Positions 29 through 64,000 of a DNA stretch of 64,000 bases are shown here, piece after piece (position 1 is the stretch's first letter; every line of letters starts with the position of its first letter). The position numbers were made by a program, and so were the translations under genes. The notes under the pieces are model-generated. The model saw nothing but the letters and a program-made list of their open reading frames with translations. It ran no database searches and was not told the origin of the DNA. The DNA lies in assembly GCF_000150275.1 (NCBI RefSeq), contig NW_002060956.1:186001-250000 (forward strand). Direction: 5' to 3'. This DNA comes from Trichoplax adhaerens (taxonomy: Eukaryota > Animalia > Placozoa).

Positions 29-9894
<9,866 letters not shown>

Positions 9895-11938: not shown

Positions 11939-13618
11939 TTACATTGGACCCATTCTCGAATAAATTTGAGGAGCAGATGTGCAAAGGCCACCACTGTAAC
12001 GTTGCATATCGTAGATATCACGATAACTATTAGAATGATTTTGTGTCTGATTAGTACTTGCTGTAGCAACAGCTGGTGATTGCCAATATGATGGTATAAG
12101 ATGTTGTTGTTGTTGCTGCTGCTGTTGTGATTGCTGTTGTTGTTGCGATTCATCATGCTTGGTTACAACTGGATTTGTATTATGAGCTTCGAGAAATTGG
12201 CTGGAAACAGCAGCTGGAGCAGTACAAAGTTGTCCAGGTGATACGACAGCAATACCGCTTGGATAGGATAAAGTGCCAGCTGTATAATAATGATTGCCAG
12301 TTCCACCAGGCCATTTATTGACGGGGTAATCAACAAAGGGATAATTAACAATTCTTTGCATGTTATTTTTACCACTAGCAGTATTGGGGCTTGATCTGGC
12401 TGAATTTGATGATCCCAAAGTTCCTACTGAAGCACTACCTGTTGAATTGATATCGGCAACCGAAGTATGCGGTATACTGCTATTCTCATGGCTCGATTGA
12501 TCATGGCCGTCGTTCTCAATTTTACATTTACTTGGATGATCTTTTTGATTAATTAATGATGTTAGGGTGTGATGCGATTGGTCGTGGAGTGTTGATGGTA
12601 GTGGAGACGATGACCGATTAACATCATTATTGACTGCTGTTGTTTCACCTATTTCAGCTTTAGGCAAACTTCGTGTAGAAGATGATGAAGAAGATGGTTG
12701 AACATCTAATAATTTACTATTACTATCATGATGATTCTTATCCGATACTTTACCTTTATGATCGCTTGCTAAACAATCATTTGATAATTTATTATTGACG
12801 TCTTGCTGTTGTTGCTGATGGTGGTGTTGATGATGCTGATGATGATATGATTGCTGCTGTAGTTCACTACTGCTATTGTTAGTATTGCTAGTGCTACTAC
12901 TTGAAGAATTTCTCTTGAAACGTTTACGTCGCCGTAGAAAACTTCCATTTTCAAACATATTTTCACTATCTGGATGCAATGTCCAGTAGTTGCCCTTTTT
13001 CGGTCGCTTTTCACCTTCTTCACGCGGTACCTTAACAAAGCATTCATTTAAGCTTAAATTATGCCTAATACTATTTTGCCATCCTTGCTTATTTTGTCTG
13101 TAGTAAGGAAAATGGTCCATGATAAATTGATAAATACCATTTAAGGTAATTTTGCGATCATGCTTGCTCTTAATAGCCATAGCAATTAATGCAATATAGG
13201 AATAAGCTGGTTTAACTGCATTATCTTTAGTCGTGCTAGGTGCAGCAATAGCAGTTCCAGTAGCAGGGTTAGTCATTGCTGTTGAATAGCGTTGGCTAAC
13301 AGCACCAGGAGTTGAATAAAATTGCGCTCCAGTATGACTTGACATTAAAGAAACCGAATGGTCCTTAGCAGCAACGGCAACAGGCACCGCAGCAACATTA
13401 GGATATTGATCGCCGCTAGCATGTGATGGCATCATCTGTAACGAAAGATGTGGTGGAGCAATCGTCGGATAAGGATGGCCAGCTCTATAAACTTCATAAC
13501 TACTGTAATTATTATCAGGAGCATACACGGAATGTGTAGTGCCAGGATGTGGCGTAATTAAATCGTTGGTAGGTGTTAAATTCTTTTGACCATTGGCATT
13601 ATAGGCATTCATATCCAT
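11939..13618 (-). CDS. FoxC: Forkhead box C transcription factor, intronless, 559 aa
   Basis: Forkhead domain [15 protein letters not shown]...[43 protein letters not shown]...[15 protein letters not shown] has the FoxC-type end (FoxL1 has ENGNYRRRKR). The C-terminal [10 protein letters not shown] resembles FoxC SVREMFESQR. Contains polyQ/H/S tracts. Confidence 0.9.
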
Positions 13619-31600: not shown

Positions 31601-34600
31601 AATCAATCTACAATACGGCAGTGAAACATTATTCAAAGGTGATGGGACAATTTTAGCCATAATACATTATTAATAACTTACAGTAGTCATTCTATTGGAG
31701 ATTTCAGTTCAATTCTTCACTAAATGGATTGATATTAACGGCAGTATTAAAGTTTTAATTAGTTATTATTATAGCTTACAGTATGCTACCTTATTTCTAT
31801 TGTTTGTCATCATATTATTCTATCCTAGTATAAATTGTGATGTATAAATAACATCGCTACCTATAGGAATTTATATACCGCATTCCAAAATTGTATTCTA
31901 ATTATGTAGTTCATGGACTTGTTTACATTCTGCAGGTAGAAACATCTTGATAGACAAAAGTGTATTCTAGAAACATTCTAGTTAACAAAAGCATGTTGTT
32001 AAAAGTGAACTCGTGAGGAACGTATATATTCTGCTGGTCTGTGATTACTGTCATTAGAACCAACTGGTTGTTTACATATTCAGCTACAAATTATTGTAAT
32101 CCACAGTGTACAAATCAATTCAAAATTACATCATTGGACAACTAGTACTTATAGGCGAGAAATAGTTTCGAGAGAGAAAAGAAAAGATTGATAGATTTCA
32201 AGAAGAAGGAAGATCAAACCGAGTAAGTAAGAGATTTACGTTGATATTCATGAAACCGATTGAATTTGAAGGCGATTTTGGATTGCCGTTTTACATGGTT
32301 GATTTTCTTTCAGTCGGTACTGAACTATTTCTGTCTACAAGTGATATGTGCAACTATGGATCTCTCCAATTATTTCTTACTTGATCCCGCAATTTTTTTT
32401 TCATCTACCTACTCTCATCTAACGGCAAACATTGTCTATCTACCGTAGAAATTCAAGTTGGTTTGCAACAGTAATATCAATTCGTTAATGTGATATTAGT
32501 CGCGGTGAAACCGTTTGACTTACTTCACAATGACGAAAACACTACAATCAATTAGTCTAGTAATCTGGTAAGCGCCTGGGCGTCATTTTTTTTCGTGCAC
32601 TCCGTCGTTGTTTAGCAGAGAATCAACTTATCTTTTTTTTCTCTTTCCCCCCCCCCCCTTCCCGTCTTGCTTGTAACGAGCAGACAGTCAGTCTGCGCGA
32701 AAAGGTTTATATAACAGCAGTAGCTAATCAATTTTATTGCCCTTATGGCATGATGAAGAGATTGTAAATTGAATTATTGTAATTTTCACCAGATAAAACA
32801 GCATAATATCGGTTAGTACGGTCCTATTTCTCCATTGCTTAATGATTACCGTAGAATACATGTCAAAATGATATTCATGTTGACGAAGTTTTTTGCAGGA
32901 CGAGTGATTGAAATGATAATTGTATTTATTTTTTTTCTCCTTTGCACGTCATGCTAATATCATTTTGACTTTTGAATTATATCAAAATAATAATTTGAAG
33001 AATCGTTCCGATGACATTAAGTACACATGGACAATTATAGCAGTAAACTACATTTGGCTTTGATTTCTATCTTGACATTTTTACAGTACTACAGGCCTAA
33101 ATAAACATCGTTGATTAATTTGAAAATAGGTAGTAGTTATTTTTTTTATTTATGGTCTCTATTCGTGTCCAACATGGATGTAAAATAGAGCAATTTTTTT
33201 TTTTCTTAACCAATTTTGTATCGTCGCTGCTGTTTATCGAAAATAAATACCCCCTACCTATGGATCGACAGTTTAAAATTTATTTTCAAGCTTGAATCGG
33301 GCATTTTGTTGTAGCCAGCCAGTACTTTTCTTGATGAAGTGGACAATAGAAGTGGAATTGATCATTTTTCTACGATTATTCTTTGATTGATAAAACGATA
33401 ATAATACAGTGAAAATAGTATATGCAACAACATTGGTACCCTTTATAAACGGAACAAATCTACCATCGAGTATAATGACAGTCCACTTGTATATTATTTT
33501 CCGAGTAATGAGTATAAAAAAAGATAAACTATCGTATTGTCTCCTCCCTGAAGAATGATTAGACGACCGAGGATTAAGGTAACGCGTATTTTAACCCTTA
33601 TTTTTATCCTTTTTACCGGTATCCTATTTTAATGGCTTCTCCATCACTATGAAAATAATGATAGGAAAAAAAATTACAATTTATCCTTTGCTACATGGCT
33701 TGACCCATAATGGAACAAATCGTTGCTTTCCTTAACTTGCCTTCCCGTTGATTGTTGTTGTTGTTCATTCTATCGTTCCAGTAAGATCACGTCACCGTAT
33801 TGATCTTAACTGCAAATGGATAATATAAAAGCGATGACGTTATTTTTTTGTTCCTCGTTGGTTTTTGCTGATATTAACTTAAATGGACAAACTGGCTGTA
33901 ATTGCAAAATCAATGACTCATGTTTGAGAAGAAAGGTGATGAGATCATAGTTTTTTCCAAGCAAAATGAGCGACGTGAGCATATCTATTGTTAGATGAGA
34001 AGGATGGTAGCAGGAGTAACTGGAATTTTAAAAGGGTTTACACGTATGGCGGACAGCTTGTCCGCTTCGTATTCTTATCCACCGATATTCCATTGGATTA
34101 CTAAATAGATCAAATCACGAGTGGCAAGCTATTATCCTCAATAAGCAGTAGTACTGTAATTGTTATTGCTATCGCACTAGAACTGATCAATCGTACAGTA
34201 TTGTGCAATCTCCTCTCCCCCAAAATTGTTTATATAGTATGATTTTGTCCTAGGGAATCAATACTTTTAATCTCATGAGCATCGTGTATAGAATGAGAAT
34301 GGAAGTAATAGGCTAATTTGATCCAAGCTAAAGAATAACTGATTAGAATAACACTTACAGCTTGAGTGAAATTGGAAACGCTTCGATTGAGAAGGCGTTT
34401 TGATTACTATTCTCAAGTCGGAATAGTAAATTGTTTCAAAAAAAATTTTCCACACTCACTCAAATGTATGCCAAAGTAGAAAATTAAACTTCCTTTAAAG
34501 AGGGCTTTAGTTTATTATTTTTAAATTTCTATTCAATTTATCTACTGCCATCCAATGTTGATGTAACTATACAGTATACATTCTAACTCTAATACATAAA

Positions 34601-37600
34601 AAGCTGATAGAATACTTAAAAAAAAATTGTCATCGTTTTTCCTTGCTATTGGAGTGTTTTTCACTGTAATGGAATAGAATCGACTGGTTGAAGTTGAGAT
34701 CTCGGTAAAAATATAAATACTCCACAAGATTATTTTCCGTTTACCCCCGCTTTTCAAGGGAAAATATAATGCCTAACTAGATTACTTTTTATTTACCGTG
34801 ATAGTATTATTAGGGCAGACGGGAATAGAGATTTAAATGATTGAAATATCACAAGGTAGAACAGTTTTGCCTTATCAGCGTGATTTCTCTTTTTGGGACT
34901 CAATATCTACGGGTTGCTTTTTCTCACCGATGTCGTGAAATTCAATTACTGATCGCATAAAAGTTTAAATTTAAGCAGACGCCAATCCAGCTGAGGTACT
35001 CTGTAACCATAATTTAATTATATACCTAATACGACAGTATCGACGATAATTAATTACTATTTTCACGTCTCGTCTTTTTGATGATTGTACGTATTTATCC
35101 TAGCGTTCTACACATCATCGATTACGGATTACTTCGTCACGACCAAGAATAACGTTCTCGTTTGATATTCTACCGTAAAATTAAATTGTAAATTTTCAGT
35201 TAAACTACTAGGACGCACTTCTTGGTTGTATCAAATACAATTGATACTGCTTATCCTGTTTCATCTTTTTTTCATTTTATTTTGGCCCACGGCCTAATTT
35301 AATTTACTTTACTACCGCTTTAGCTTTTCCTATTTATTACTACCGATCGACATCAATGCAAGATAGACTTGGGTTAACTACCGTGTAGCGTTGAGTAAAA
35401 AATAAAGCGGCAGCGGCGAAAAGAGAGTTTACATACAATCGGCTTCGGCCAGTGCATTTCTTTTTCGGTTACTACAGTACTTTATCGGTAGAATTCAATG
35501 ACTGCATCAGTCCATCATCGGCCTTGATTACTTTTGACTCAACTGAAAGTTGATCGATGGCCATGCAATAATTACTTAGCATTAAAATAGTATCGCATGA
35601 TTGACCTATCGCATAATCAGATGCCCACTAGGATTATAGTTATGACAAGCTTTTGTTTGCCATTGAATACAGCGTATTTACTTTAATAAATTCCTAAGTA
35701 TACAATCGTTAAACTATTATTTAGACTATTACTGTAACTAGCATACCATCTATCAGCAGGTTTGATGTCAAATCAGTCGTAATTAACAGTAATGTGTCAT
35801 GGTTGAAATTTGGCAAAATTTCAGCTGCATAACTGTATAAGTACGTAATATTTATAGCATCATCTCAAGCTAGGAATAATATAGTTTCCAACGACATAAT
35901 TATTTTTTTTCGATTTCAAATAAGATTATGTCGCACGTAAAATTATTTGTTCTCTCAATGATTGCATCAACCATATGGTGATTTATATAATATACAATTC
36001 ATCACCTATCAAACCTTCAATTCTTTGATATATAATTTAATACCAATAAACAATATTAAAACAACGGCTAATGTAATTATCTTTTAATATCTATGCATAC
36101 GATTTCATTAGCATTTTAATAATGATTAAACTATTTACGGAATGTTTTATTTTTTTTGATCCAATTTCCTTACTACGAGCATTGGCTGGTTATTTCTTTC
36201 GATTAACTTATTTCATCTTGTCGTTGTTTTCTTCCTACTTCCTTTTAACTTTGCCTATCTGATTACTACAAGGTGATTAATCGATCGTTTTTAAGAAGGC
36301 CTCCTTGCAAATTTATCCTTAGACGCTGTAACGTGGATGGCCCAAGTGTTGATCGCCTTCAAAAGTTACTGTTAAACTTGTGTAAGTCCGTGTTTAAAAT
36401 GTTACTATAAACTACAATGTAATCATTGCGTGGCAACGTTTAGCCTTGAAATAGCGTTACATCATGATATACCAGTGCAAGAAGTGATCATGTTGTCCTA
36501 AATTTAGCCAGATAAGGAAGAAATTGGTAATTTAATCGCTTAATACATGATTATTAATTAAGGTTGATAAGAATACAAGGAAAATACTGTCTAGCGTCTA
36601 ATGTACAGCATGATTGAGAACTGTTCTATCGTAGTTAATGATTTCATTGGAAGGTCAGATCAGATCGTGATATTTCAGTAATAATTATATAATTGATGTA
36701 TCCAAGAGCAGAGGCAATATCTCTGTCGATGTTACAACTAGGGTGAAAAAAAAATAGCTAGTTGATGGCCAACCCTTAATGAATTCCTATTTCTCATCTC
36801 TTCCTATGTCTATTTCCAGGAAAGGCTATTTAAAACATCTGTACTTTATTGACTATTAAGACAAAGATCGCCATGTAAGCATCCCATTAGTAATCCATTC
36901 ACAAGGACACTGTGGTTCATGAATAATTCCAAGTAGATATTTAGTCTTGTTTCCGTGATTGTATAAATTTTACTCTATCTGTCCCACTGCATAACAACAA
37001 CATAATCTATTCGCCATCTTTCTCTATCACAGTAAACTAGCAATCAAACGACTTGTCAGCATTTTGAAATGCTTCGCTGCCGTATTGTTTATTGTCCACC
37101 ATTATTGTACTCATTGCATCAGGGAGTAACATAATTTCACGGGTGTATCGTAATGTAAGCAAGAGTTCAGTAGGAATGATTAATTATTACAACAATGACA
37201 AAATTTATTTATAGACATTTAGAAAGCATCAAACTTTTATAGGCTGCTGGAACGTCTATACGCGTAGAATCCACTCAAGATGTCGTATCATGGCATAACG
37301 CTTGAGCGACTAGTTGGAAGAGTTCTTGCTTTTAGATCTTTGAACGTGCTGCTCTACAGTATTATCAAGGCTAGATTATAGAATGATTGTTGAACAGCTT
37401 GTTTTTGACTGTATTTCACGTTGAGAATTAAACTAAACTCTCGTTCATGCCTACGAGTATACTATATACGTTATTCTTCATCATTGTAATAGCAATTACA
37501 TTTGCCAAATATAGTACAGCCTCTTAATAATAACTATAACTTTATTATTAAGCTATCTTCAATTTCTTTCTATGACGCAACGAAATGTACAAGGGGAGAT

Positions 37601-40600
37601 AATTTTGCTATTGAGATCAAGTCCTAACCTCACTTGTTTCCGAGATTAACTCCTTTGATCATGAATTAATGAATTCAAATAGGTATTTGGTTAGAAGGGA
37701 TTAAGGGCCAGTTGGGTTGATTCGTAAATTAATTAATTTTCACCTATTCTACTATAATAATTTTGATATTATAGTGTCTATTTACTTATGATGATAAGAA
37801 TCTTTTATTAATTATTTATACTATCTTTAGTAACCTGAAATTTAATGTTTATTTCCTATGTTGAATCAGTGCCCTTAATGTAGATGTGCGCGGCTAGTAC
37901 CAATAGTAGTAAATAGTCATTAAAATTACAATGCGCGGTGATGATGAACAGTCAAATTCATTACAATCTTGCCGATATCTAGTAACCGCTAACATGAAAG
38001 GAATCTCGTATTATACCTTCGTTTTAAAAATGGCGATAGGAACATGATGACATTGCAGCAGTGTTCATGAACTTGATGTATCCATTTGTTGTACTACGAG
38101 TATAAAGAAGTAGCGCACCTATTTAATGCTTTTTATCTCTACGTTTCGCCTACTCTACGCGTATATTAGAAACTCAATGCGATAGTGGCACAGCTGCCAT
38201 AACAAGGTATTGATTGATTGGTAGAACTATCTCTAGTTATATTCTTTCTCGGTTTTACTCTACAGTACAGTACTACTATTTGGCATTTAGCCAGAGATAA
38301 ATTACCTTATAGTTGTAGCTAATAAGCATGCATCTCCCTATTGATGAACATAGTGTGGCGTAGTACCTTTATGCGTACAGTTGTAAAACTGTAAAATTCC
38401 TCTTGAATGAAATTTCTTACTGAATAGATGCTCTGCAATTTTTCCTCTCTTGACCACCGTTGTTGTTCCTTTGATCCGTAGTTTCTTATACCGTACTACA
38501 GCGATTTCACTACCTCATCCTTACCTACTTGCCGGATTACTGTCATAGCTTTCGATTTTTTTATAAGGGAATGTAGTCAATTGACTCGTAAAAAAATTTA
38601 ATTTACTGATTAATTCAATTAATCCGTTCATAATTACATATCTTCCAAGTTGTTGAAAGTCAGCGTAGCATTCGTATTTCGAAACTGAAACGAATACAGT
38701 CATAGCAACATGGAGCCTTTTATTTCATACGGTTAATACTGTAGACACGACAGATTGATCATACTGTCCAGGCAGTAATCCTACCACTCTTTGTACAACA
38801 TTTTGCTGTGCAGTATTCATTAATTATTGACCGCAATCAAAAGATTTAAGAATTCCAGTGCATCAACAATAACGGTAATCAATACTATACTACTACTAAT
38901 AATACTGTACGGCTGTGGAGCTTGGGTAAAGTAGTTTGCAATATTGTTTCATGATTTGATGAAATTAAAAAAAATACGAGTAAAAAGGCTCCACTCGTTG
39001 ATCTAATTAAAAACTGAAAGAATGCAATATCTCGGATATTTTAACAACAAACTCACAGGAAATGAACACGTGGATATAAAGTTTGACTAATACGAAAAAA
39101 TTTGTTTTACAAATTGAGGTTACAAATTCTTTCCTGATGGAAATATTTCGGATATTCCTGACTGATTGAATTGATTGATTCATGAATTAATAGCGAATAC
39201 TAGTTGTATCGTTGAATTGGGCTAAATTACCAGCGTATGCATCACTCTTGTACTGTACACTAGAAATAACTCCACTTTGGTGTGTCTCCTAGCTTATCGG
39301 AGATGGCGACACTGGCAGACTTTGCATAAAAGCCAATTGTGTTCATGTTCCAGATAAGTCACTAATCTTCATTAACCGTTACATTGCTGTTCTATTTGCA
39401 GGCATACGTATTGTACTTTCTTATTGCTGATGGAATGGAATGTCTTGGTTCGCGCCAGTATTTTATCGTTGGATAAAAGAATGCAATAATCTCTTGGAAA
39501 ATTGATATTTTTATACGCCCTTTTATTGTCTTTTAACTACCTACTGTATGTCCAGTTAATCTATCTAAATCTGGTATAGAGTACAAATTGAATCTTGCCT
39601 GCATTAAAAGCAAGTTACTACTAATCTTTATCCGTTATCTATCGTCTGGGATACAACATTTTGACGCCCCTAATCATCGACTACAGTTTTTGCACAGTAC
39701 CTTATTGGAATTATATTGGATTGTCCAACAATAGCCACTACACTACAGTGAAAGATCTTGCTATATAATCTGTGCAATCATTATAACACCAATAATCCAG
39801 AATTGAAAAGATCGCGACAAGTCGGAAGATTTTCATAATAAATTTTATCCAACAAATCGAAGGGATAATTACCATTGTTTATCGACGTTGTCCACTTTTC
39901 CAGCTGCTTAACGAATAAACTAAGCCAAGACAGTTGAAGCTTCTGCAATAATCATCGATTGTAAGGTACGAGCTAGAAGGTAAAGGAATATAGGCTGTCA
40001 TAATGATGCATTGACATTACTCGTATACTTTCCATTGTTGAATCATCTCGGTGCTAGTTGTAATGACCATTTACAATAGTGCTTATTTATTTACAACAAC
40101 TGAACTGACGATTTACAGTATTTCACTCCAAATTGCATGCTATATTGGCTGTATAATTTTAAATTTGAATCGATATTTTAAAGTTACCCCTGTTTCACAT
40201 TGTAAATGGATTTTTTTGTACCAACGATATGGTCAAGAGAGCTTATTCGAGTTTTTAGTGATGTAATACTCAGAATTGAAAATGGTAAGATCAATCGGAG
40301 ATCAATATGAAGTGCAGCAAGATGATGAAAATTTGAAAACAATTTTTTGGATCATCTTTTATAGCGATTGCTGGAAACAAATTGTTATCGCTACAAGACC
40401 TCTATTTGAAGGTCCGACCTATACCAAGAATTCAGTTTGCAAATAGATCGCGACTACATTAGCACCAAATTTCTCTACTGTTTTCAATCATGATTGATTC
40501 TTGTTTACACTAAATAATTTCTACTTCTCCTTTGTATGCTATGACCATTCGACTTTGAAATATTTCACATCATGTCATCATATATTACAGTACAGTATTG

Positions 40601-41299
40601 AGGCACTACTTGGTCTACTCTCAGAACCGTAAATGGACGATGAAAGTCCTATAAAGCAGAAGGAAACGGCCATTTTTAAACTAGCGTAGTTCGAAATTCG
40701 TTAGTACGCAAAACATGGATGCTCTCTATGAGATTGTGATTGTATAAGCTAGATTAGTTTATTACAGTACTCTTATTTCTTGCAAGTACAATAAATAATA
40801 TAATTAATCAACGATACTGAAAGTCTGAAACTATTTTCATCACTTTACATCATTGTAACTACGTTGGTGACAAAGTACGGAAGAGGCCAAGGTAGTTATT
40901 TAGTGACTTGCACCTAAATGACATACGATTGCTATGCAATAACCGTTGAATAGTGAATCATTATAATGAGAGTTGAATACAGTAATATTCATGAAAATTT
41001 CACGAGACAATCACCTGCTTCACCTAGTAAACGGAGAAAAGTCAACAATGTTGTCTTTCCAGCCACGTAACACTGTCGTTTATTGTTTTATCATACGATC
41101 TATGCTCCTTGTGTATGACGATGAAACCTTTCACGGTAGTACCCCCTTGCATCACTAAGATTATGGACTCGTCTCCTCGCTCTCCCCATGATGCAATCTA
41201 AACACACATTCGGTATTACTATCTGGTTCTATCAACAGGTTCGTTACGGCCATTCGTTGAGTCGCATAGACTATCAACTCTGACTACTGCAACCTCTTC

Positions 41300-41740
41300 A
41301 GTTTCATTTTTCCTACTGTAGTCATTTTACGACAGTGAAGAAATGCAATAATGATCATAGCAGTATGTTACTTGGTACTGTATATATCTGTCAACAAGTT
41401 GGTCGTAGCCGCATGGACATGATCAAGTCTGACTCGTATACAATCTGTTGCAACATATCGATTTTTCACTTTTTCTCACTGTAGTCATTTTACGGCAGTG
41501 AAGAAATGCAATCGTGATTACTGGTTATATTTGCCAACAAGTCGGTTGCAGCCGTGCGTTTACTCATTTTTCCCACTGTAGTCGTTTCACGGCAATGAAT
41601 AAATCCAGCAATCATAATAATAATAATAATTACTGATTTGCTGTCTAGTGTTCTGCTGTCGACATGTCTGTCTAGCCGTGTACCCCTATCCATTTTCGCT
41701 TTTCCCAGTCTAGTCGTTTTACAACAGTGAAGAAAATGAA
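41300..41740. repeat. Degenerate repeat, 4 copies of a ~45-bp core
   Basis: Core resembling TTTTTCCCACTGTAGTCATTTTACGGCAGTGAAGAAATGCAAT at ~41307, ~41470, ~41567 and ~41700. Confidence 0.85.
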
Positions 41741-41939
41741 AAATAGATCAAGGGTAGTGCAGTGAATACGGAATCAGATTAGCGGAAGAACTTGACTTTC
41801 GGCAGTTTTTAAATCAAGTTTCTTGTAATAAGAATGAGCTCTAGCCGTAGACACTAGCCAATTCCTGGTTCTATCTATCAATCGCCATCAAAATGATAAC
41901 TTTTTTTTTTTTTTTTTTTCTTGGAATGTTCTGTGAAAG

Positions 41940-42070
41940 CATGACGTAACCGCTAGTCTGCACCGTATTGTACAGTATGTACTGTAGACCTGGTATTAAT
42001 CCAGTCCAGCCGCAGTTTTGCTTACAGTACATTGTACTGTAAGCACCGGGCTACTGTACTGCAGGTAGAA
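41940..42070 (+). promoter_or_regulatory. Putative distal promoter or enhancer of FoxQ1
   Basis: CpG-richer patch after a T19 run. Contains TGACGTAA, two TACAGTA palindromes and a possible donor CAG|GTAGAA at 42064/42065. Confidence 0.4.
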
Positions 42071-44684
42071 ATTGTTTACTCATTCTGATTCATGCTTGCC
42101 ATTGTCTTTCCCATTGTTCATCGTTGCGCATTTGAAATCAATCGACAATTCTTATTGACGGTATACCGGCGTTAATTTGTTCAATTATTACTTGCACGAT
42201 CGGTAGTCTTATTTAGATTGATTTTACAAGCCTGATCCAAGCTATTTTTCATTCTGCATGTCAGTATGGATGTTGTAGGAAAAGTGTAAAAGCAGTATTT
42301 GAAATTTTTTGGGGCTAGGTTTTACTGAAATCGCGTCATTTTTGGTGTCCTTAAAAAGCTGGAAAGTTGTTGGCAAGAGGTCAGTAATAATGGAGTACTA
42401 GAAATGATCGGATGGATAATCATCATAGTAACCGAATCGAAATGGCAAGCTGATCACCCTTTTACAACCCTTTCCCAACTGATCGATATGCCATATATGC
42501 ATTGTGCTTTCCCTAGTGATTTGTAGTGTGTACTTGCAGTACCTATTCCTGTACCTATTCCTCCGGCATGCATATCATGTTATCAAAGATGTGTCTGGCT
42601 ATAAATAGACTTGGAGTGTGCTTCTATGTTCAATATGCGGTAGTAGTACTAAAGTCGGATAGCAAGCTAGATCGTGATCCGGTAGATGGGGGGTATAAAA
42701 TAGAAATGAAGAAGCAAGATACAATCGCTAGAGTACAAGAGTATCAGGAGTAAAAACGACAATCACCACCTTGAAGAAAAATACAGCCGAGGACTCTCGA
42801 GATCATCACGTGAATAGACTTAGAAGGCGCTGTAAATCACTACCAGGCATAGTAACAGAGAGTGATCGATTCCATTCTGCATTAGACTATATAGCTTATT
42901 ATGACAGCGACAGTATTGATGATGGGACGACTACGATATCAATTTGCAAACATGTCGTAGTAAAGGCATACTGTATGCCTGTGGATGTGTGAAGTAAATG
43001 CCTTGAAATCGGAACATAGCGACTAGAATAAAACCAGTAGATTGGCTCAAGCAATGTAGTCGTGTACGGCAAAATGGTACTGTACAAGTGGCGCTTAGAT
43101 TGTTTAGAACAGTGTTCAATTTCTACCTAGTGCAAAGCTTTCCTAGGATAGAAAGACTACTGTATTGCAAGACAATCTTCACTCATCTGTTACGTCATGC
43201 TAGTACCCAATGGACGACAGACAATCAAGATGTTTTTCCTCTTTTACTAGCCCTAATATAGTCTCCTCCATTCATGCAAGCAGTATGTTTTGTGAGGAAT
43301 AGTGCAATATTTTTCGTGTGATCATTTATTACGTAGCTACCGTAGGCATTTGGGTGTGTAGTACCATTGGCCGGTATGCATGTTCTTCACACTTTCAGTA
43401 GTTGTCTAATGATTAGTTACTACAATTATTGCAAAGTGTGAAAGAAACTTGGATGGCCTGGCTTAATATAATTGGTTGCTACTACCCAAACTATTCTTCC
43501 AATTTCTTATATATACTTGTTCTGTAACACCTTGTGCGTTAGTCATAGCTCTCAATCGTACAGTACACGTACTTAGGCAGGCCTTGTTCAACTATTTCTC
43601 CTTATTCATTTCACGCTGAAACGTTGAAACTTGAATTGAAAAATTATTGCATTTATTTGAGCATAGTGGTACAATTTATTTTTTAATGTCCTAAATGGCT
43701 TTAAATTTGTCCAAATTTAAGAATTTAAAAATTTTCAATTTGAATCATGTCGTGTTTGTACTATATTTTTAGATTTGCCGATTCATTTATAACTTCAGCT
43801 GATTCAGAAAAGACAAAGATTCGCTTCTGAGGTAAGGATCAAGAATACAGTACTGATTTCAAATTTTATAGTTATTTTTTAAAATTTGCAAATTTAGTGT
43901 ATTCCATACTTGCTTTTACCATGATGATCGTGTCTTCCTCTTGGATTGAACTCCATTGATTATGTAGTTAAATTAATTTCCAATTCATTCGCAATTGCAA
44001 GTTACATTAACATAAGGAGAAAATGATTGATAGCGTGGTGCTCATATTGAATATGAGAAGCTTTTCAATTATAAAAAGTAGAGTATGACTAATGACAATA
44101 TGAAAGCACGGTAGCATTAGTCGCATTTTTTGAATTTAAAAGTGTTTCCATATTACAACCGACATAGTTGAACAAGATATACGGCATGCCGTATTAATGT
44201 GTGATATAAAAGGAATTTTTGTATTATTCCATTTCCAACGTATATCATTGTATGCGTTCTCGACGACTACTGTACTGGATAGACTAAGGAGAAAATTGTC
44301 GTTGATGTTGTATTGTCAGCCCTCGACAGTCTGCGAGTAGTCATACTATGCTACACGTATATACTATATGCTAGTTTTTTTTAACACAAGTATGCGATAT
44401 TCATTCGATCAGTTTTAGTGTTACTACAAATAGAACTGTCTATTTGTGCAGTATTTGCATAAGAGAAATGAATACGTGTAGTTACTCTATTGAGATATGC
44501 ACAGTATTTATGCATTGCTTAATTAATCTCAATAGGCAATTTAAAAAAATGCTATTTTTTCTATAGAGTTTAACTTGACGTAGTGATGATAATACAATTA
44601 TTTTTTTAGATGATTGCTTTTCATAATTAAGATTTATACTTTTGTAAATAAAATTAGATTTAACAATACTGTGCTCCGTGTCTA

Positions 44685-46194
44685 ATGCTAATAGCGAAAA
44701 TGCCGTCGATAAAAAAACAGAAGAAAAAGAAGCCATCCCCATCCAAACGACCCAGCTATCAACGCTATGCCAAACCTCCGTTATCCTACATCGCCTTGAT
44801 TTCTATGGCCATAGATGCCTCACCAGACAAGCGTTGTACGCTCAACGATATCAATAAATACTTGGTTGATAACTTTGACTTTTTCCGTGGCAACTACACC
44901 GGCTGGAAAAATTCGGTTAGTTTGAACATGCATTGATTTGTTACAGTCTATTATTATATGCGGAAATAGAACTAGACGCATATGATAATTATAATTGATC
45001 AATGCACCGTAACTATCTTAATATGGTGTTATATCCTGCATGCTATCGAGTTAATAACTAGTGGTATACGTCTTCCATTTGAAAAATTATTATTCGAATA
45101 AAGCTATGTCCATGTTGGGAACCTACAGTATTGAATGATGCTTTTTTTCAATTTCTTGCCACGCATAATAATGTGTGTATATTTAAAATGGTAATGAAAC
45201 TTACTTTAAACTACTTCTGTATAATCTGTAGAATTGTGAAAAATTCAATATCGCAGTTTATTTACTTTGTCCCAATCGACCATCATGCTCGATTGGATTA
45301 ATCATAGAATGCCTTGTATTGTCCTATTTTTCATCTATTTACTTCAATGGCCGTATATTCATAAAATTGCTATTGATATGATAGGTGCGACATAATTTAT
45401 CGCTAAATGACTGCTTTATTAAAGTCCTCAAAGATCCCAATCGACCGTGGGGTAAAGATAATTACTGGACAATTAATGAACAGAGTGGATTTACCAGCGC
45501 AGCTGTAGAGAGTTACAAGAGAAGAAGAAAGAGACTTCGAGCAGATAATGATGCATCGTCTGTTACTACCGATGATAATGTTTCCATTATAAGGAGCCGT
45601 ACCAACAGTTCTTCCGATGTGACGGAATCCAGTTATGATCATGCTACTGTCAATTCGACGAGTATTCATCATGAAATCGCCCCAAGTTGTAGTTCTCGAG
45701 GTTCAACGAGTGGAACAACGACACCTAATGCTACGCATTTTGCAAAAGCAGATGAAAGTGCTGTTACCAACTACGACGAACTGATCGATGAAAATAAAAA
45801 TCGTATTAGCAATGTGGCTGTCAAGCCTAATGGTGATCAATGCTTTATGTCAGCGGCAGAGAAATTCTTAGAAGCAGCGTATATTAAGCAACAAATTCAA
45901 GCTACGAATTGTATGCCTGTTGCAGGCATGACTGCATCCGTGTCCAATGTACCTTGTGTTAATATACCTTTTAATAATAGCCATGTAACACCGATGAATA
46001 GTCTGGCTCAAGTGGCACGGTCGCCGGCTTTTGGATCTCAATTTAATAATGCTACATTAATTTATCCTTACCATAACTTTTTATATAGATCTTTATATCC
46101 TCCTACTCAACCTGTTGAATCTTACCCTTATCCTAGATTTCATTATTGCTACGCAAATCACGTTAGTGCTACCAATGCTGCTTGTAGCAAGTAA
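44685..46194 (+). CDS. FoxQ1: Forkhead box Q1 transcription factor, 2 coding exons (44685-44915, 45385-46194), ~346 aa
   Basis: Spliced domain [14 protein letters not shown]...[12 protein letters not shown]|[28 protein letters not shown]. The D-P[10 protein letters not shown] segment is diagnostic of FoxQ1. Phase-0 intron GTTAG...ATAG at 44916-45384. The start could instead be the ATG at 44700. Confidence 0.9.
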
Positions 46195-48119
46195 GGAATG
46201 AAGAAGAAAAAATGTAGTTTAAGGAGGAATCGAGTGATTCCCAATCAAGGCTGGCTGCAACAGCCATCGATGACGGCAGTCGATAGCGTAGCAATTTTTT
46301 CAGTATGGAATAATCGAACTTCGAAAATTCAGGTTTTTTTTTTTTCCCCCTCCATGCCGGCATATGAAGGCCAAGCAATCCATCTATTTAGCAGCAAGCC
46401 TTTAATAGTGAACGAAGAGTTAGTACTGTAAAACAGTTTGGATCCGTACGTACATTGGCACTATAATGTACGATAGATTAAATTATTGGTATCATTCTAA
46501 GCCTACATGTAGTTTTTAATTTGTTGTATTAGCATTGGTTACAGAGACAACTTAGATAACTTGATAAAGTTATTAAGGTGTCCAATTTTCATGTCACTAG
46601 AACTTGTACTCTTGATAGTCTGCTCAAATGGATAGCGTTCTAGACGACTTATGACAGCTTATCAAATAACAAGAGGTAGCTTAACGAATATAATGATAAC
46701 GTTTGACATACCTCTTCTTGCCAGGTATGGGGTTGAAGGCTAACATTTTTTTTTGTGTTCTATTACATTTTACTAATTGTGATGGAAAGCTAAGAATAAT
46801 TGATATAACGTAACATAGTAAAATAAATAGAATCAGACGCCAGATTCAATGGTATCTTCCATGGATACTCAATATCGTTTTGCTCTCTAATACTGTATAA
46901 CATTTTGTATAATACAGCTAATTGCAATATTGTCCTAATTTATCATGCATATATCTCCAATTGAAATAAATTTTATGTGATTGGAAAGGATGAGGTTATC
47001 ACGTGTAGATTTATTTAATGATTGATTCCAATTTCTCTGGATTTTACCATGCTAAGTGGAAGCGGGCATTTTTTACCAATGCAAGTTTGAAGAATCTGGA
47101 GACAATTTTTGTTACAGTATTGCACATAGTAGTGAAATGGCGTTGTAGGTGTATTTTAGAGTATTGAAATAACGAGCACCGAAGCCTCTCGACGCGGAGT
47201 ATATTCTATATGCATGATGATCCTTGTATTTTGTTGAGTAAATTAACAAACGGGTTGTAGGAATGATTCGATTGCAAATGGCACCACTACGCTCATCCGT
47301 TCGTAGATTTAGTTTTGAGGCATGATGAGAAAACTTGCTCATTGCTATTTTCTCAAAGCCCAACGGTATTTGCGTCTAGCCTGCTGGGTCGATTGCTTAT
47401 TGTAGATTTGAACTAGCACAGCGATTGGAAAAGTTCAGTACAATTATTTATTAATAATGCAGCAATCTATCCACATGCATTGAATCTAGAAGTAACTACA
47501 GTAATTCATGTTAATACTAAGTACTGCGATCAGCTTGATAAAGTCCCAATAGCAAAATGGGTGTTGAGAAAGTATTTTAAGAGGGTAGCGAAAACTTACT
47601 CGATCGCAGTGAATAGATTCGTAACTGCGTTGTACTTTCCAATTTGCCATGATGGCGGCGTTGGTGTCCTTAAGCACGGAAGTTTTTTCTTTGGCCTCGA
47701 TGTCCTTGACAGTAATAAGGCTACTGAGTGAAAAACAACCGAAAAATAGCGCATGGTTCTACATAGTAAAGGGAGTAATGGACGCTAGAAACACTTTTAT
47801 GCACAATCCTTGCTCAGGCAGTAGCTTACTTTGAGCGTAACTAGACTGTAAAATTATATTTCTTCTTTCATACTACAAGGATTACTTTTTGATAGCCTCT
47901 AGCTGAATCTATAAGTTGGATCATCAGTTATGATCTGCAATGGCAGTTATGGATTACTCCACACCGGATTGGGTGGCCCACAGCTATACAGCATCGTTTG
48001 GCAAAGCCGTACATGGTTTAGTTTTGTCCTAGATGTACCGAAAAATCTCAAGATGAGCGTACTCGATTTGAATTTTTTTACTGTACGTTACTGCAGGACC
48101 ACGAATGAAAAATGGCTTT

Positions 48120-48845
48120 ACTCCATTAGACTGACTAGGCAAGCGAAAAATTGGGGCAAGAAATCAAGATGAATGCCGTACTCGCCCAGAAGCTGAAGTA
48201 TGGTATAATAAATTCATTTTACACTATATTTTTCTGGACTTTTTATTACGGCATCGTTCAGGTTTTCTGCAACCCGAAACACAGTACACCAAATTTTCAA
48301 AATGTCCGGAAATGCAAATTGTCAACCCTGGTGTGGAATTCAGTACAGAATACGGATATGCAAATGAAGGAGAACTTTGCAAATCTTCACCAACTCATGC
48401 TCTACCGTGCATTATACTAGCTTGGCAAGCGAAAAAAAATGGGAGGCAACAAGTGAAGATGCATTCCTTGTTGGATCAGGAGCTTAAGCGTAGTTCAGTG
48501 AATTGCCTTTTTTCCTGTCCTGGACATTTTCTTACAGCACTGTGTAGCAAATTGAAAAATGTCCAGAAATGCAAATTGTCTACCAACATATGCAAATGAA
48601 GTAAAGACCTTGACCAATTTTTTAGGGCCTAACATGCTCTAATGCATTAAACTGACTAGCCAAGTGACAAAAAATTGGAGACAAGAAATGAAGATGAATG
48701 CCTTGCTCGATCAGTAGCTCGAACGTAGTTCAGTGAATTCCATTTTTACTGTCGTGGACATTTTTAGTTACAGCACAGTCAAGTAAATTGAAAAATGTCC
48801 ACAAATGGAAATGAATGATCTACCCTTATGCGGAATCCAGTACAT
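48120..48845. repeat. Degenerate tandem repeat, 3 copies of ~235-290 bp
   Basis: Units begin CATTA(G/T/A)ACT...CAAG(C/T)GA...AAGATG at ~48124, ~48410 and ~48645 and share AAAATGTCC..AAATG.AAAT. Confidence 0.85.
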
Positions 48846-49789
48846 ACTGTATTTCAATGAAGTCCAGTATAGTAGAAAGCTGTATAAAATTTTATTTTGG
48901 GGAGTTTCTACTAGCAAGGACTAAAATCGATCGATCGTTTTCTTTCTTTTTCAAGTACAGCATGAGATAGAAGGTAGACATTTTTAGCATTTTTCCAGTC
49001 TCTCCTACAGGCTAGTACTGTAAAATGTGTTGTCTTTTTCCTTCTTTTTCAAGTAGTCGCTTGGTCTTGATCATCTCGAACTTAGTTTACCCTTCTTTAA
49101 AGTGGATAGTACAGTAGTGTAGTTCGCTATGTCGGAAATACCCTTGTCTTTTTCACTGCTTATGGACTGGCATAGGCGGCCATTTATTGCCTTATAAAGC
49201 TTTCTCTTGAAGCCTTTTTCATGGCAATCCATGCTGATGATGGTGGACAAGGTGTTAATTGGCGGCATTGATGAGTATGGGTGTTATTTCAGAAGCCTTT
49301 AGTGGAGTCCAACTGACTAAATCAAGTGGGCAAAATGACTTTGTACACTTCCGCAAAACGCGTCCTGTGGAGTCCTCCATCTCCTGACGAATCCACGGGT
49401 ATTCTATTACTACTCTTTGATTGGGCTGCAGCGACCATTACGTCGTATACAGGTGTTGAATTTGGTAGTAAAACTCGGATGCAAATGCATCGGAAAGCCT
49501 ACATCCAATCCTGTAGTAAAATAAGCCAATCGGAAGAGCAACCACATTACTTGGCACATAGAAGCAATTTAACCTGGGGAATACCCACAACGGTAAATAG
49601 ACATTTCTCATTCTCAATAGGATTGATTTTTATTATTATGAATGATGTACAAATGATCGGTTGGTATGATGACTACAAGGTAAATCAATGATGAACGCAT
49701 TTCATGTCTGCTTGAAAATTTTCAACTCATGATTGCCAATCTTGTCGTTGATGGATAACTCTATTGGATAGCTACGATCCATCTTTCGC

Positions 49790-50245
49790 TTATGCTATGG
49801 CAGGTATTGCCAATTGGGTGATCATTTTGTTACATTTCATCCAGTATTTTGCCTAATTTTGACCCAATTGAGAGTGAGCGCAAAGCCAAATGGCTTAGTG
49901 GGAAGATACTCCATTTTCAATCTACGGTAGCATTTTTCCATTCATGCCGTTATAGGCAGGTATCGCCAATATTGCAATCGTTGTGTTGCGTTTCGTGAAG
50001 GTTTTTTGCCAATTTCGACTTAGCTGAAAGTCGGCTAAAGCCAAGTGGGTTAGTTAGTAGACGATACTCTCTATTCTTGAGTACAGTAATCGCTTTTCTA
50101 TTTTCTATCGATGGTACAATCTTCGACTCATGCCGTTGCAGGTAGGTGTTGTCGAGCATTCCCTTTTATTTCATCGAGGGTTTTTGCCAATTTATACCAA
50201 ATTGAAAGTAAAGCAAAGCCAAGCGAGTTTGAGTTAGTAGACGAA
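49790..50245. repeat. Degenerate tandem repeat, 3 copies of ~160-185 bp
   Basis: Shared TTTTGCC(T)AATTT...TGA.AGT....AAAGCCAA blocks at ~49847, ~50004 and ~50182, plus CATGCCGTT..AGG.AGGT junctions. Confidence 0.8.
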
Positions 50246-51927
50246 TCAACCTAGCAATCCTGTCCTATACTAGCTTAAATTTGAACGCCATTGGATAACC
50301 AAGATAAAAAATAGATACACGTTGATGATAGCAATTTTCGTACAGGATATGAAAAGCAAATCCTCTTGCACTCAGTCTAGCTGCGGTAAGATACCGCGCA
50401 AAAATATTCTTCCATGCAGCCCCATCTTCTTTTTCTTCTAATACGCCTTCTGTTCTGTAGAAAGCGATCGTTAAAATGTATCATATCGATAAAAACACGA
50501 CATTGAAATAGATCTCACATGTTTTGAATCATCGATCGGACTGAAAAATTGTTGTTGATGTTAATCGACTTGGTCGATTCTCTGTGCCAGTACATCGACT
50601 ATCATCAACTTGCCAATTCGGTAAATGTTCAAAATCAAAAATGATTACACCACCAAGGCAAAGGAAATCTTACGTCGATAACCAATGATACAGTACTGTA
50701 CTGTGTAATGTCATTGCCTAAAAGAAATCCTTTTCTTCAATTGACAAGATATTTTTTGCATACGCTATCATTTATATAGTTTAAACTCATCAACTTCTCC
50801 ATACTTTTGACGGTCAAAACGCAATGAGGAGTCGATGAAGATACTGCGAATACAGCAGCTTCATTACTTGATCTTGCCAATCTCTTGGATGCTCACGAAA
50901 TTAAATTAATTATCGTTTTATTATTGCTCAATTCATTCGCTGCAATAATGAAGTTTAGCAATGGTCATAAGTTACCTTTCATACATAGGTACGCCGTAGC
51001 CATCACTTGTTGTCCTGAAACGATTGTCAAGGAAAAGAAATTTGGAGGCAGTGTGCTATCCGCCATTTTTATTTGTTTAACCAGTATTATTGACTACATT
51101 CTATACTTTCAGCCAAGACGACAATACGGTAGCTTTAACGCGGACATTTATTCTTGGATAAGAAAAATTGGCTAGTGCCTTTTTAACCTTTTCTATCCCG
51201 TCTTGAATTCAATTAAACACTTTCCACGTAATTTCAGCCCACCGCTAGGAATGCAATGCACTTCCCAATACGACCCACAAGTTTGATTACCCGCCATCTA
51301 GTTTACACTTCATTACTTTTTATACAGTGTTGAACGCTATGACGGCATTAACAATTGAACATGGCTGCTGTCGATTGAGTATTCTAAAATTGCATCATAC
51401 GAATAGGATGACAAAATTTATAGTGTTAATCAGTAGCACCATGAATCATCATCTACGCACAGTACAACAGTTGAACAAGGTGTTATATTTGCGACTATCA
51501 CTACTGATACTCCATTATCCGATAAAGTATAGGGTAGTTCATTAATTAACGATAGAAAATTCAAGTAAATAGTGTGTATTTTTACATTTGTATCCTCTAT
51601 CTTCTGTTGATGATATTCGGTCTTCTTTTCTAACATAGTCAAAAGCAAGACAAAAAATCGAACATTACCACCACATACGGTACATTAAATCTACATGCAG
51701 AGGTAGAATGGCAACGGGATTGGATCTATAACAAGGGCAAATCCATCGCCAAAGGAAAAGCTATTGCTCTACTTTGACTTCAAAGTAGAATATTCACACA
51801 AGCAGTAGAACGCTATTGCAAAGAAAAAGAGATCAAGAGAAAACAGCGTTATTATAGTGCCAGTTAAAATTTACGGATTTTAAGACGTTATTGCTACATC
51901 GTTGTGTAGACGTAGAAACGTTACTCC

Positions 51928-54145
51928 ATGGCGGCAACCGATTGTAATGTCGAGCAGAACAACAAAAACAGTCAAGATATAACCAACCGGAGCTTTATTG
52001 ATGTAAGCCCATCTATTACTACTTCAAATTCATCTGCAGCAATGGAAGTAAGTCATGATCAGATGATAGCTACATGTAGCAACATGGCGGGTGAGAAAGG
52101 TTCAGATGGACAAAATCGTAAACCAGAAAAACCACCTTATTCCTATATAGCGTTAATTGTTATGGCGATCCAAGCCTCACCCAGTAAGCGCATGACTCTA
52201 AATGAAATTTACAAATTTCTACAAGATAAATTTCCATTTTTCCGTGGTAACTATTTAGGTTGGAAAAATTCGGTAAGTCTTGACCAATATTCGTTGATTT
52301 TCTGCATGAATTTCTTCCCATTTTGAGCTTGTTAGAGGATGAAAGTAGAATATGAATGATCATATTATTGACAATCTTGATGAACTAATCAATATCCATA
52401 CTAAATCGTATAAAGTTCATCCTACTATCTATACAGTGATGTACATTGCCAGGCACTTTTTTTTTCAGTTTTTCTCTTGCAAGTCCTTAGCATTGCCTTA
52501 AATTAATATAATTGAAACGTAGCTTAAATACAATCGTTGAAATAGAATTACGCTATTATAGATTTTCTGTTTATCATCTTATTACCGTGGTTAAATACTT
52601 GTACTACCTATAAAGTCATGTATGTATTGCCATGGACTTTTAAAGTTTTCCTCTTACAAATCTCTGCTATTGACTTAAATTATGATTGAAACGTAGCTTA
52701 AATACAATCGTTGAAATAAAATGACTACTATTATCGATTTTCTGCTTATTATCTTATTTCGGTGGTTAATGACTTGTAGATTATAGTACATCAAGTAATA
52801 TCCTTCGATCTAAATGACTCTAGCATTGAAATCCTTTTCCTTCTAGGTTCGCCACAATCTATCGTTAAATGAATGCTTTATTAAACTACCCAAAAGTGCC
52901 GGAAGGCCTGGGAAAGGCCATGATTGGGCACTCGATTCTTCATGTGAGTATATGTTTGAAGATGGATCGTTTCGTCGCCGGCCTCGCGGTTTCCGTCGTC
53001 GATGTCAAATGATTCAAGATCGAGCTCGTGCAGGCTACCCAGTTAACAAACCGTCTACGTTGCACATTCTATCGTCTATACCTAGTAATGCTGAAATCAA
53101 TGAAACGATCAACTCCAATAATCATGAAAATCCTCATGCAAACAATTGCGTGACATCGATCGAACATGAACGGTATCATCCTAAAGAAACTATTCTGGCA
53201 AATAATTCAATAACAGATCAAACGCAACAAATTATCACTTCATCTGGCCCATTTTTTACCGGTGCAGCCACAACCTATCATAGTGGATACCTTGAATCAG
53301 CTAATCCATTTTATAATCAAGATAATACTAGTAATTCATCATTTTTGTCAGCATCCTATGCAGATGTTCAATGGAGAGGTTCGGTAGAATACACTGAAAG
53401 TAATAATGCAAATTTAACGGCGACTGAGTTTATCCCAATTGGAAGTCGTTCTTTACCACATCAGTATCCATTTCCAGTCTACTCTCATCATCCTGGTTTA
53501 ACTAATCAAAGTGGAATTGCATCCTATCAGGCATACGGTTTTCCTTACGGTTGTATCGATAATGCCAATGAATACTCATTTACTGCTAATAATACCAATC
53601 ATAATGATAGTGGCAATACTGGTGATGTGAATACAGACGGCCAAGCTAATGATAATTCGCCCAACAAGAATACTATATCAGCTGTATCTACAGATGATAA
53701 TGTCGGCAATCTTTATGATGATGCAATTCAAGCTGAACTGTCTATGAAATCTGTATCTGCTTCCAATGTAATTACCCAAGTAGAAATTTCAACAGATTAT
53801 AATAATTCAAGCATCAATCCCAATAGGTACTCGACCTCATTAGTTATGTCTCCTGTGAATACTACAAGTCGTGAAGCTAACGAGACTAACACCGCATCAC
53901 CTGAGGCTAATAGTATCTCCAACAGTAAGGTTACTTCACCTATTAATTCTAACGATAATCAAACATCCGATCTGCAAATGTCTGATGTTACCGAAAGTAT
54001 CTATGATGTCGATGATGCAAATCTACCTTCTTACACAACGTTACCACCAACGTCGTTAATGTCATCACAGGATCTAGACTATTCTAATAGTCAAGTAGAA
54101 GAATATAACGATTCTCCCAACAGCAACAAATTGCAAGAAATTTAA
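51928..54145 (+). CDS. FoxF: Forkhead box F transcription factor, 2 coding exons (51928-52272, 52847-54145), 547 aa
   Basis: [52 protein letters not shown]|[27 protein letters not shown]...[19 protein letters not shown]. The RRRPRGFRR segment is FoxF-diagnostic. Intron GTAAGT...CTAG at 52273-52846. Confidence 0.95.
52422..52778. repeat. Tandem duplication (~178 bp x2) inside the FoxF intron
   Basis: ATTGAAACGTAGCTTAAATACAATCGTTGAAATA is identical at ~52511 and ~52685, and the flanks are alignable. Confidence 0.9.
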
Positions 54146-54455
54146 GCTCTAATTATCGTTGTATACTTAACCTAGAATAGCCAATTTTGTACATTTTTTG
54201 GTATTTGTGAAAGCGAATATCGCCCGATTTTTTACAACTCAAATCATCTTACACAACGTTACCACCGACGTCGTCAATACTACCACAGGCTCTAAACTAT
54301 TCTAAAAGTCAAGTGGAAAAATGCAACGATTTTCCTAACAGCAACAAATTACAAGAAAGTGAAGCTCTAATTATCGTTGCATCTTGAGCTAGAATAGTCA
54401 ATTGTACATTTTTTGATATTTGTATAAGCGAATATCGCCCATTTTCAACTCAAAT
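54029..54455 (+). repeat. Tandem duplication (~215 bp x2) spanning the FoxF stop codon
   Basis: TCTTACACAACGTTACCACC...AAGCGAATATCGCCC...CAACTCAAAT at 54029-54244 and 54247-54455. Confidence 0.95.
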
Positions 54456-63270: not shown

Positions 63271-63434
63271 ATGTCTAATCAAGACAAAATTCGTCGCATG
63301 TTGGAAAAATCCCGAAAACAAAGTCAAACTAAAAATGCACGTGTCATTGCTAATCGATATCGAGTTGTTCGAAAAATTGGTAGTGGAAACTTTGGTGTTG
63401 TATTCCTTGTCAACGATTTGAATACTGAAGAATT
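63271..63434 (+). CDS. NEK11: First coding exon of a Ser/Thr kinase, NEK11-like (3'-partial)
   Basis: MSNQDKIRRMLEKSRKQSQTKNARVIANRYRVVRKIGSGNFGVVFLVNDLNTEE(L), followed by donor GTAAGT. Contains the GxGxxG loop and resembles NEK11 LIARRYVLQQKLGSGSFGTVYLVSD...EEL. Not in the ORF track because it is under 60 aa. Confidence 0.7.
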
Positions 63435-64000
63435 GTAAGTATCCTTCTTTTATTCATATGGATTGATCTTTCAGCAGTAATATTAAATTCTATCTTATTT
63501 CTAATACTAGTCAAACTCTTCTTCGAGTTACTTGATTCATAACACCCTATACAGTAGACTACCATTAGAATCAATACGAGTAGAACCTTCTTGTATTGCT
63601 ATCTTAACCCACTGCACCTCAGAAAGTCTGAGAACGTGTATAGTCTATTATTGACCTACATTAATGAAATCCATTGATTGGTACATAGACTGCCATAATT
63701 ATAGTCGATATTAAACACTACTTCATGTTCCATTGTTTCATGCTAGCAAAATATGCAGCCTAAAATTAAATCAACCTTCAGTGATAGTCAATGATGATAT
63801 CCTAATCTATTTTGGACCTCCAACTACCGGTATAACGCTAAACGCCGATAATTTATCATCGTGGATAGCTCACAAGAACCAAATATATCTCTCCAAAAAA
63901 ATTGAATCTACATAAACAGTTAGCCTTGATCTATTTGACTTAATTCAATCAGAATTGCCTTCAAATGAATTCACATCTAGCTTCGTCAACGCTACGAAGG

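Follow-up and report, generated by a model that had tools for sequence, protein, structure and literature searches.

A compact FoxC-FoxQ1-FoxF cluster in the placozoan Trichoplax adhaerens as a probable counterpart of the bilaterian Fox cluster

Three forkhead (Fox) genes of different classes, FoxC, FoxQ1 and FoxF, lie together in a unit of 42,207 bp in total in the genome of Trichoplax adhaerens (RefSeq assembly GCF_000150275.1, contig NW_002060956.1, positions 186,001 to 250,000); the whole stretch of 64,000 nucleotides that was analysed is referred to here as the window. FoxL1-FoxC-FoxF-FoxQ1 is a textbook example of an ancient gene cluster, and it is thought to be held together by common expression in the mesoderm and gut. 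The Trichoplax array is very probably the placozoan counterpart of this bilaterian cluster, having arisen before the split between placozoans and bilaterians. The same classes are linked in a placozoan and in bilaterians, and therefore the linkage predates Bilateria. A preliminary description of the window, made from its letters alone, had proposed that the cluster predates mesoderm and persists in an animal that lacks it, and this shared linkage bears the proposal out. By our own arithmetic, the chance that three given genes come to lie within 42 kb in a genome of 105.6 Mb is ~5e-7, and that for any triple among the ~19 Fox genes of this genome is ~5e-4.

The array was probably built by tandem duplication from a proto-FoxC gene (possibly a proto-FoxC/L1 gene) and a proto-FoxF/Q1 gene, the latter then splitting into FoxF and FoxQ1. 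These duplications would have taken place before placozoans and bilaterians separated, and hence before mesoderm, and the array would have been kept since then. The encoded proteins are expected to act as ordinary sequence-specific forkhead regulators.

The coordinates of the genes and spacers are given in Table 1. The open reading frames (ORFs), their Pfam matches and their splice sites leave the central observation of the preliminary description, three forkhead genes of different classes within 42 kb, standing. The forkhead domain of FoxC occupies residues 136-223 of 559 (Pfam Forkhead, E-value 5.5e-39), and FoxF exon 1 matches the same Pfam family with an E-value of 1.5e-18. The exons of FoxQ1 and FoxF were searched singly rather than as joined proteins, and their splice sites were read from the DNA sequence. 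In FoxQ1, the donor GTTAGT lies at 44916 and exon 2 follows ...ATAG and opens with VRHNLSLND; in FoxF, the donor GTAAGT lies at 52273 and exon 2 follows ...TCTAG and opens with VRHNLSLNE. The introns had been described as tiny, but their actual lengths are 469 and 574 nt. FoxQ1 and FoxF are arranged head-to-tail on the same strand, 5.7 kb apart, and FoxC lies 31 kb off on the opposite strand, so that FoxC and FoxQ1 are divergently oriented. As FoxC is on the minus strand and FoxQ1 on the plus strand, both 5′ ends face the 31-kb interval. The window is AT-rich, with a GC content of 0.27-0.39.

Table 1. Positions of the Fox genes, their spacers and flanking features in the window
Feature	Position	Strand	Description
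CHD-type helicase	4206-4607	+	Helicase_C match; upstream flank
FoxC-like gene, single coding exon	11939-13618	-	one uninterrupted ORF, 559 amino acids
Gap FoxC to FoxQ1	13619-44684		31,066 bp, gene-free, single-copy
FoxQ1 exon 1	44685-44915	+	77 amino acids counted from the first ATG; ends ...GWKNS; N-terminal half of the domain
FoxQ1 intron	44916-45384	+	469 nt, GT..AG, phase 0, between WKNS and VRHNLS (helix 3)
FoxQ1 exon 2	45385-46194	+	269 amino acids plus stop; carries the C-terminal domain half and a FoxQ1-type wing
Gap FoxQ1 to FoxF	46195-51927		5.7 kb, single-copy, GC 0.35-0.39
FoxF exon 1	51928-52272	+	115 amino acids; ends ...GWKNS; N-terminal half of the domain
FoxF intron	52273-52846	+	574 nt, GT..AG, phase 0; placed as in FoxQ1, at the identical codon boundary
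FoxF exon 2	52847-54145	+	432 amino acids plus stop; carries the C-terminal domain half and a FoxF-type extension
Kinase-like ORF start	63271-63438	+	flank

The classes of FoxF and FoxQ1 were examined in a tree of the forkhead domain (108 columns, 62 rows), in which each exon of the window formed a row of its own beside named bilaterian FoxC, FoxF and FoxQ1 sequences, presumed placozoan relatives and the other single-exon Fox genes of the genome. Both FoxF exon rows, together with the full-length protein of Trichoplax sp. H2, are nested in one clade among 13 bilaterian FoxF sequences (support 97/95), and each of the two FoxQ1 exon rows is placed within FoxQ1 independently of the other (98/89). 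The FoxF clade is sister to the FoxQ1 clade (99/98), and FoxQ1 has been regarded as probably the nearest relative of FoxF (PMC5167519). Among the best matches of FoxF exon 2, most of the informative names are FoxF1 or FoxF2, and many hymenopteran entries are automatically named otherwise. Trichoplax FoxF is 74% identical over 115 amino acids to oyster FoxF1, including an extension of the RRRPRGFRR type and IKLPK in helix 3/wing 1. A comparison of FoxF with solved structures is uninformative on class, as its matches, headed by FOXC2, included no FOXF structure. The named matches of FoxQ1 exon 2 are all FoxQ1 except for one misnamed echinoderm entry; the exon carries a FoxQ1-type wing 1 (a 14-residue stretch), and it scores 64.8 bits against the structure of rat FOXQ1 (HFH-1, 1kq8), compared to 41.5 bits for the next class. 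The calls made for these two genes in the preliminary description could thus be retained, FoxF on the basis of its clade support and its identity to the oyster protein with the extension, and FoxQ1 on the basis of its clade support and the margin of exon 2 over the next class.

FoxF shows one departure in wing 1, where GHDWALDSS is found instead of the usual GHYWTIDP. At this position (52900-52935), an Asp replaces the normally invariant Tyr of the bilaterian GKGHYWTIDP, and the sequence is identical in Trichoplax sp. H2. This replacement may alter DNA contacts.

For FoxC, the informative named best matches are FoxC and crocodile (the insect name), and the top match is an unnamed protein, presumably from another placozoan, with 79% identity over the full length. 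Against solved structures, FoxC scores 175 bits with FOXC2, 149 with FOXD3 and 142 with FOXL2. Beyond the forkhead domain, the matches are confined to low-complexity sequence and are not significant. It is the named best matches and FOXC2 as the top structure that sustain the FoxC assignment. In the phylogeny, the preliminary calls fared unequally: FoxF and FoxQ1 are placed in their own classes, whereas FoxC is left in a polytomy and five classes are unsampled.

Published gene models are in line with these assignments. Along its entire length, FoxF exon 2 has 99% identity to a protein annotated as 'Forkhead box protein F1-B [Trichoplax sp. H2]' (RDD47705.1), whose 547 amino acids equal the 115 plus 432 amino acids of our FoxF model and whose residues 1-115 are identical to exon 1. 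The identification of the host as a placozoan, which had been proposed from the sequence, agrees with this match. A few substitutions separate the FoxF of the window from that of H2, indicating a close relative of H2 and not H2 itself. Orthology groups assigned by gene trees (Najle et al. 2023, PMC10580291, Table S4) contain a FOXC1/C2/L1/S1 group (TriadT30534, TrispH2_000693, Hhon_g07828, and HoiH23_PlH23_009379), a FOXQ1 group (TriadT30486, TrispH2_000694, Hhon_g07829, and HoiH23_PlH23_009380) and a FOXF1/F2 group (TriadT30602, TrispH2_000696, Hhon_g07830, and HoiH23_PlH23_009381). These models are presumably the same three loci as the window genes. Of the four placozoan species, two have the gene numbers in direct succession, and a third (H2) has them almost in succession. 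In H2, a further number (000695) falls between those of FoxQ1 and FoxF.

This neighbouring numbering means that the cluster is implicit in public data for four placozoans, and the novelty given to it in the preliminary description was therefore overstated, as Table S4 already lists FOXC/L1, FOXQ1 and FOXF as neighbours. Published placozoan data already include the three genes with their classes, and the finding is mostly confirmation. In the main text of Najle et al. (2023, PMC10580291), the sole Fox term is a motif label, FoxC/L1/S1, and linkage is not mentioned. Ta-foxC has been validated as a marker of the mesenchyme-like fibre cells (PMC8639732). The open literature yielded no substantive sentence on a FoxF or FoxQ1 gene of Trichoplax. 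In 2010, Shimeld, Degnan and Luke (Genomics 95:256) reportedly examined linkage in Trichoplax, and there is a somewhat better than even chance that they reported this cluster. The exact T. adhaerens FoxC ORF was not found in a collection of 15 billion proteins, and no full-length Trichoplax FoxQ1 (148-470 amino acids) was among the returns of the FoxQ1 exon 2 search. The public models of Trichoplax FoxC and FoxQ1 may be partial.

The introns of FoxF and FoxQ1 provide an additional character. Exon boundaries were read directly across the ~19 Fox genes of the genome, and a phase-0 split between NS and V in helix 3 was found only in FoxF and FoxQ1, in which the 12 nt before the donor are also identical. 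An intron common only to these two genes fits the tandem duplication of a gene that already bore it. In seven other Fox genes, whose domains resemble those of FoxJ2/3, K, N, O or P, the phase-0 split falls two codons earlier, between W(K/Q) and NS, and a FoxE-like gene has a phase-2 split inside the next R codon (SIRHN). Three intron positions are thus present within 11 nt of helix 3 in one genome; they may reflect intron sliding or independent gains. Two unnamed FoxQ1 ORFs, presumably from other placozoans, with 61% identity, start at exactly the NS/V boundary. Because they begin at the splice residue, the intron looks conserved within the phylum. Another unnamed FoxQ1 ORF of 180 amino acids, from a public assembly and more bilaterian-like, also starts exactly at the (V/M) boundary residue, and the intron may exist outside Placozoa.

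Several observations weigh against an ancestral cluster of three assigned classes. The tree has no FoxL1, FoxL2, FoxH, FoxI or FoxQ2 references. FoxC lies in a polytomy there and, in a second tree, on one side of a branch with a support of 0; neither tree holds a FoxL1 sequence. The published orthogroup lumps FOXC1/C2/L1/S1 (PMC10580291, Table S4). No FoxL1-like gene was recognised by motif among the ~19 Fox genes of the genome, and the bilaterian cluster is not matched in this respect; likewise, Table S4 of the same paper has no separate placozoan FOXL1 gene. FoxL1 may have been lost, or the placozoan gene may be a pro-orthologue of FoxC plus FoxL1. Another Fox gene on the same contig (C1401:994474-994725, ~756 kb from FoxF) was considered as a candidate FoxL1 and rejected, as it is FoxG-like and one of three such paralogues. 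The placozoan order is C-Q1-F with FoxC inverted, unlike the bilaterian Q1-F-C-L1, although the adjacency of Q1 and F is kept. FoxQ1 exon 1 alone is ambiguous in class, with 61.4 bits for FOXH1, 56.3 for FOXQ1 and 53 for FOXC2.

The same exon is 69% identical to FoxF exon 1, which brings up the possibility that a FoxF/Q1-like gene was doubled within placozoans and that its copies converged on the two bilaterian classes, leaving only the linkage of FoxC with a proto-FoxF/Q1 gene as ancestral. The adjacency and common orientation of FoxF and FoxQ1, their shared intron position and the identical 12 nt before the donor would all be expected from such a history, and in an approximately unbiased (AU) test a tree with all placozoan FoxF and FoxQ1 rows in one clade was not formally rejected at 5% (p = 0.067). 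However, the tree forced to this clade is 31 log-likelihood units worse, and each exon row lands in its own bilaterian class with starred support. Class-specific motifs, namely the RRRPRGFRR extension in FoxF and the FoxQ1-type wing in FoxQ1, also argue against a doubling within placozoans, as does the independent gene-tree orthology that separates FoxF and FoxQ1 (PMC10580291, Table S4). Lineage-specific duplication with convergence is thus improbable. Two further explanations, a non-placozoan source of the window such as bilaterian contamination and an assembly artefact behind the linkage, have a negligible probability. Nothing was found in their favour, and they are opposed by the 99% identity to the Trichoplax sp. 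H2 protein, the position of the window inside a long contig and the agreement of gene numbering in three other placozoan assemblies. Collectively, these data favour a common origin of the placozoan array and the bilaterian cluster.

The DNA between the genes was also inspected. The longest ORF in the region of 13.7-44.6 kb has 92 amino acids, although genes made of very short exons would escape an ORF scan. Ten of the longest intergenic ORFs from both spacers have no Pfam match above the cut-off, and Rfam gave no match above its thresholds in the whole window. With the ORF, Pfam and Rfam searches empty, it still holds that no other recognisable protein gene lies between the three. Dispersed repeats or transposons were considered as the filling of the spacers and rejected, since every spacer piece, searched in pieces of at most 9.3 kb against its own genome (a 105.6-Mb assembly of 105,631,681 bp in 1414 contigs), has no match there other than itself. 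In the 31.1-kb interval, the GC content is 0.27-0.31 in the left half and 0.33-0.37 in the right half. The region of 32000-52000 around FoxQ1 has a GC content of 0.33-0.39, compared to 0.27-0.31 at 14-32 kb, and holds neither long ORFs nor sequences with copies elsewhere; this region may be regulatory or give rise to an unannotated transcript.

Local direct repeats occur at several positions. Four copies of a 49-nt unit lie at 41307-41747, ~3 kb upstream of FoxQ1, and a ~236-nt unit is present three times at 48292-48820 between FoxQ1 and FoxF. A 45-nt repeat pair is found within the FoxF intron (52507-52725), and a pair with a period of ~216 nt at 54029-54445 overlaps the FoxF stop codon and 3′ end. 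Outside the array, exons at 56735-59883 on the minus strand are, judging by their motif, presumably VPS35-like. To our knowledge, none of the helicase, VPS35-like and kinase-like flanks is a neighbour of the bilaterian Fox cluster.

The reason why the cluster has persisted is a separate question, for which regulatory elements shared or interleaved in the 31-kb interval and a slow rearrangement of placozoan genomes appear about equally plausible. A bolder proposal is that the array is a conserved regulatory unit, in which FoxC and the FoxQ1/FoxF pair share the 31-kb interval and are putatively co-deployed in mesenchyme-like fibre cells and/or digestive cells. This proposal, which includes the claim that no explicit analysis has yet treated the placozoan array as a cluster, is tentative and rather unlikely as a whole. 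Alternatively, persistence could be neutral, a frozen accident in slowly rearranging placozoan genomes with no shared regulatory role for the interval, and the chance of this falls a little short of one half. In favour of neutral persistence, the genes keep their mesodermal expression in two annelids with a broken cluster, Owenia and Capitella (PMC9539403). Enrichment of the forkhead core motif TGTTTAC, looked for as a sign of cross-regulation, was not seen (11 found versus 12.8 expected), a result that counts against a regulatory unit.

Several features do not fit neutral persistence easily. The three genes have neighbouring numbers in four placozoan species, while the presumed placozoan relatives are only 61-79% identical, and the raised GC content in the right half of the interval is not accompanied by ORFs. 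Trichoplax has about one gene per 9 kb (with the gene count of the 2008 genome paper); a single-copy, gene-free interval of 31 kb is large for this genome. If the array is indeed a regulatory unit, a 'mesendodermal' Fox module and the helix-3 intron of FoxF and FoxQ1 would predate mesoderm and would later have been co-opted by bilaterians.

The cluster implies that not only the FoxF/FoxQ1 and FoxC lineages but also the linkage between them are older than Bilateria. It also offers a simple system for asking whether shared regulation keeps clusters together, as single-cell and chromatin maps exist for four placozoans. The value of the finding is limited by the public classification of the genes and by the question of ancestry, which was probably addressed in 2010.

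Comparisons can be made with other Fox clusters, both within this genome and among bilaterians. A FoxD-FoxE pair on contig C1408, 35 kb apart, is a second linked pair of clade I genes in the Trichoplax genome, showing that tandem Fox pairs are retained more generally there; it differs from FoxC-FoxQ1-FoxF in involving other classes and another chromosome. The pair consists of a FoxD-like single-exon gene (3438856-3439113, plus strand) and a FoxE-like two-exon gene (3474818-3473717, minus strand) with the signature RHNLTLNDCF. Their classes were called by motif recognition and the 62-row tree, with no dedicated analysis; in this tree, the FoxE-like exons group with fish FoxE3 and gavial FoxD3 (97/92), and the FoxD-like gene is unplaced. 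Compared to the bilaterian cluster, the placozoan one is much more compact (42 kb) and resides in a host with neither mesoderm nor gut. Its FoxF and FoxQ1 carry a helix-3 intron, whereas clade I Fox genes usually have no intron at that place (PMC9539403). The origin of FoxC, FoxF and FoxQ1 has been placed in eumetazoans after their split from sponges (PMC9828451, citing Shimeld et al. 2010), and the cluster is described as an ancestral bilaterian feature (PMC4077281, PMC8918179, and PMC9539403). In humans, its counterparts are FOXQ1-FOXF2-FOXC1 at 6p25 and FOXF1-FOXC2-FOXL1 at 16q24. As in the FoxL1-FoxC-FoxF-FoxQ1 cluster of amphioxus, Saccoglossus and scorpion, the same three classes are tightly linked in Trichoplax. 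Moreover, in the placozoan as in bilaterians, FoxF and FoxQ1 are adjacent and mutual closest relatives, for which an origin by tandem duplication has been inferred (PMC8918179, PMC4077281, and PMC5167519).

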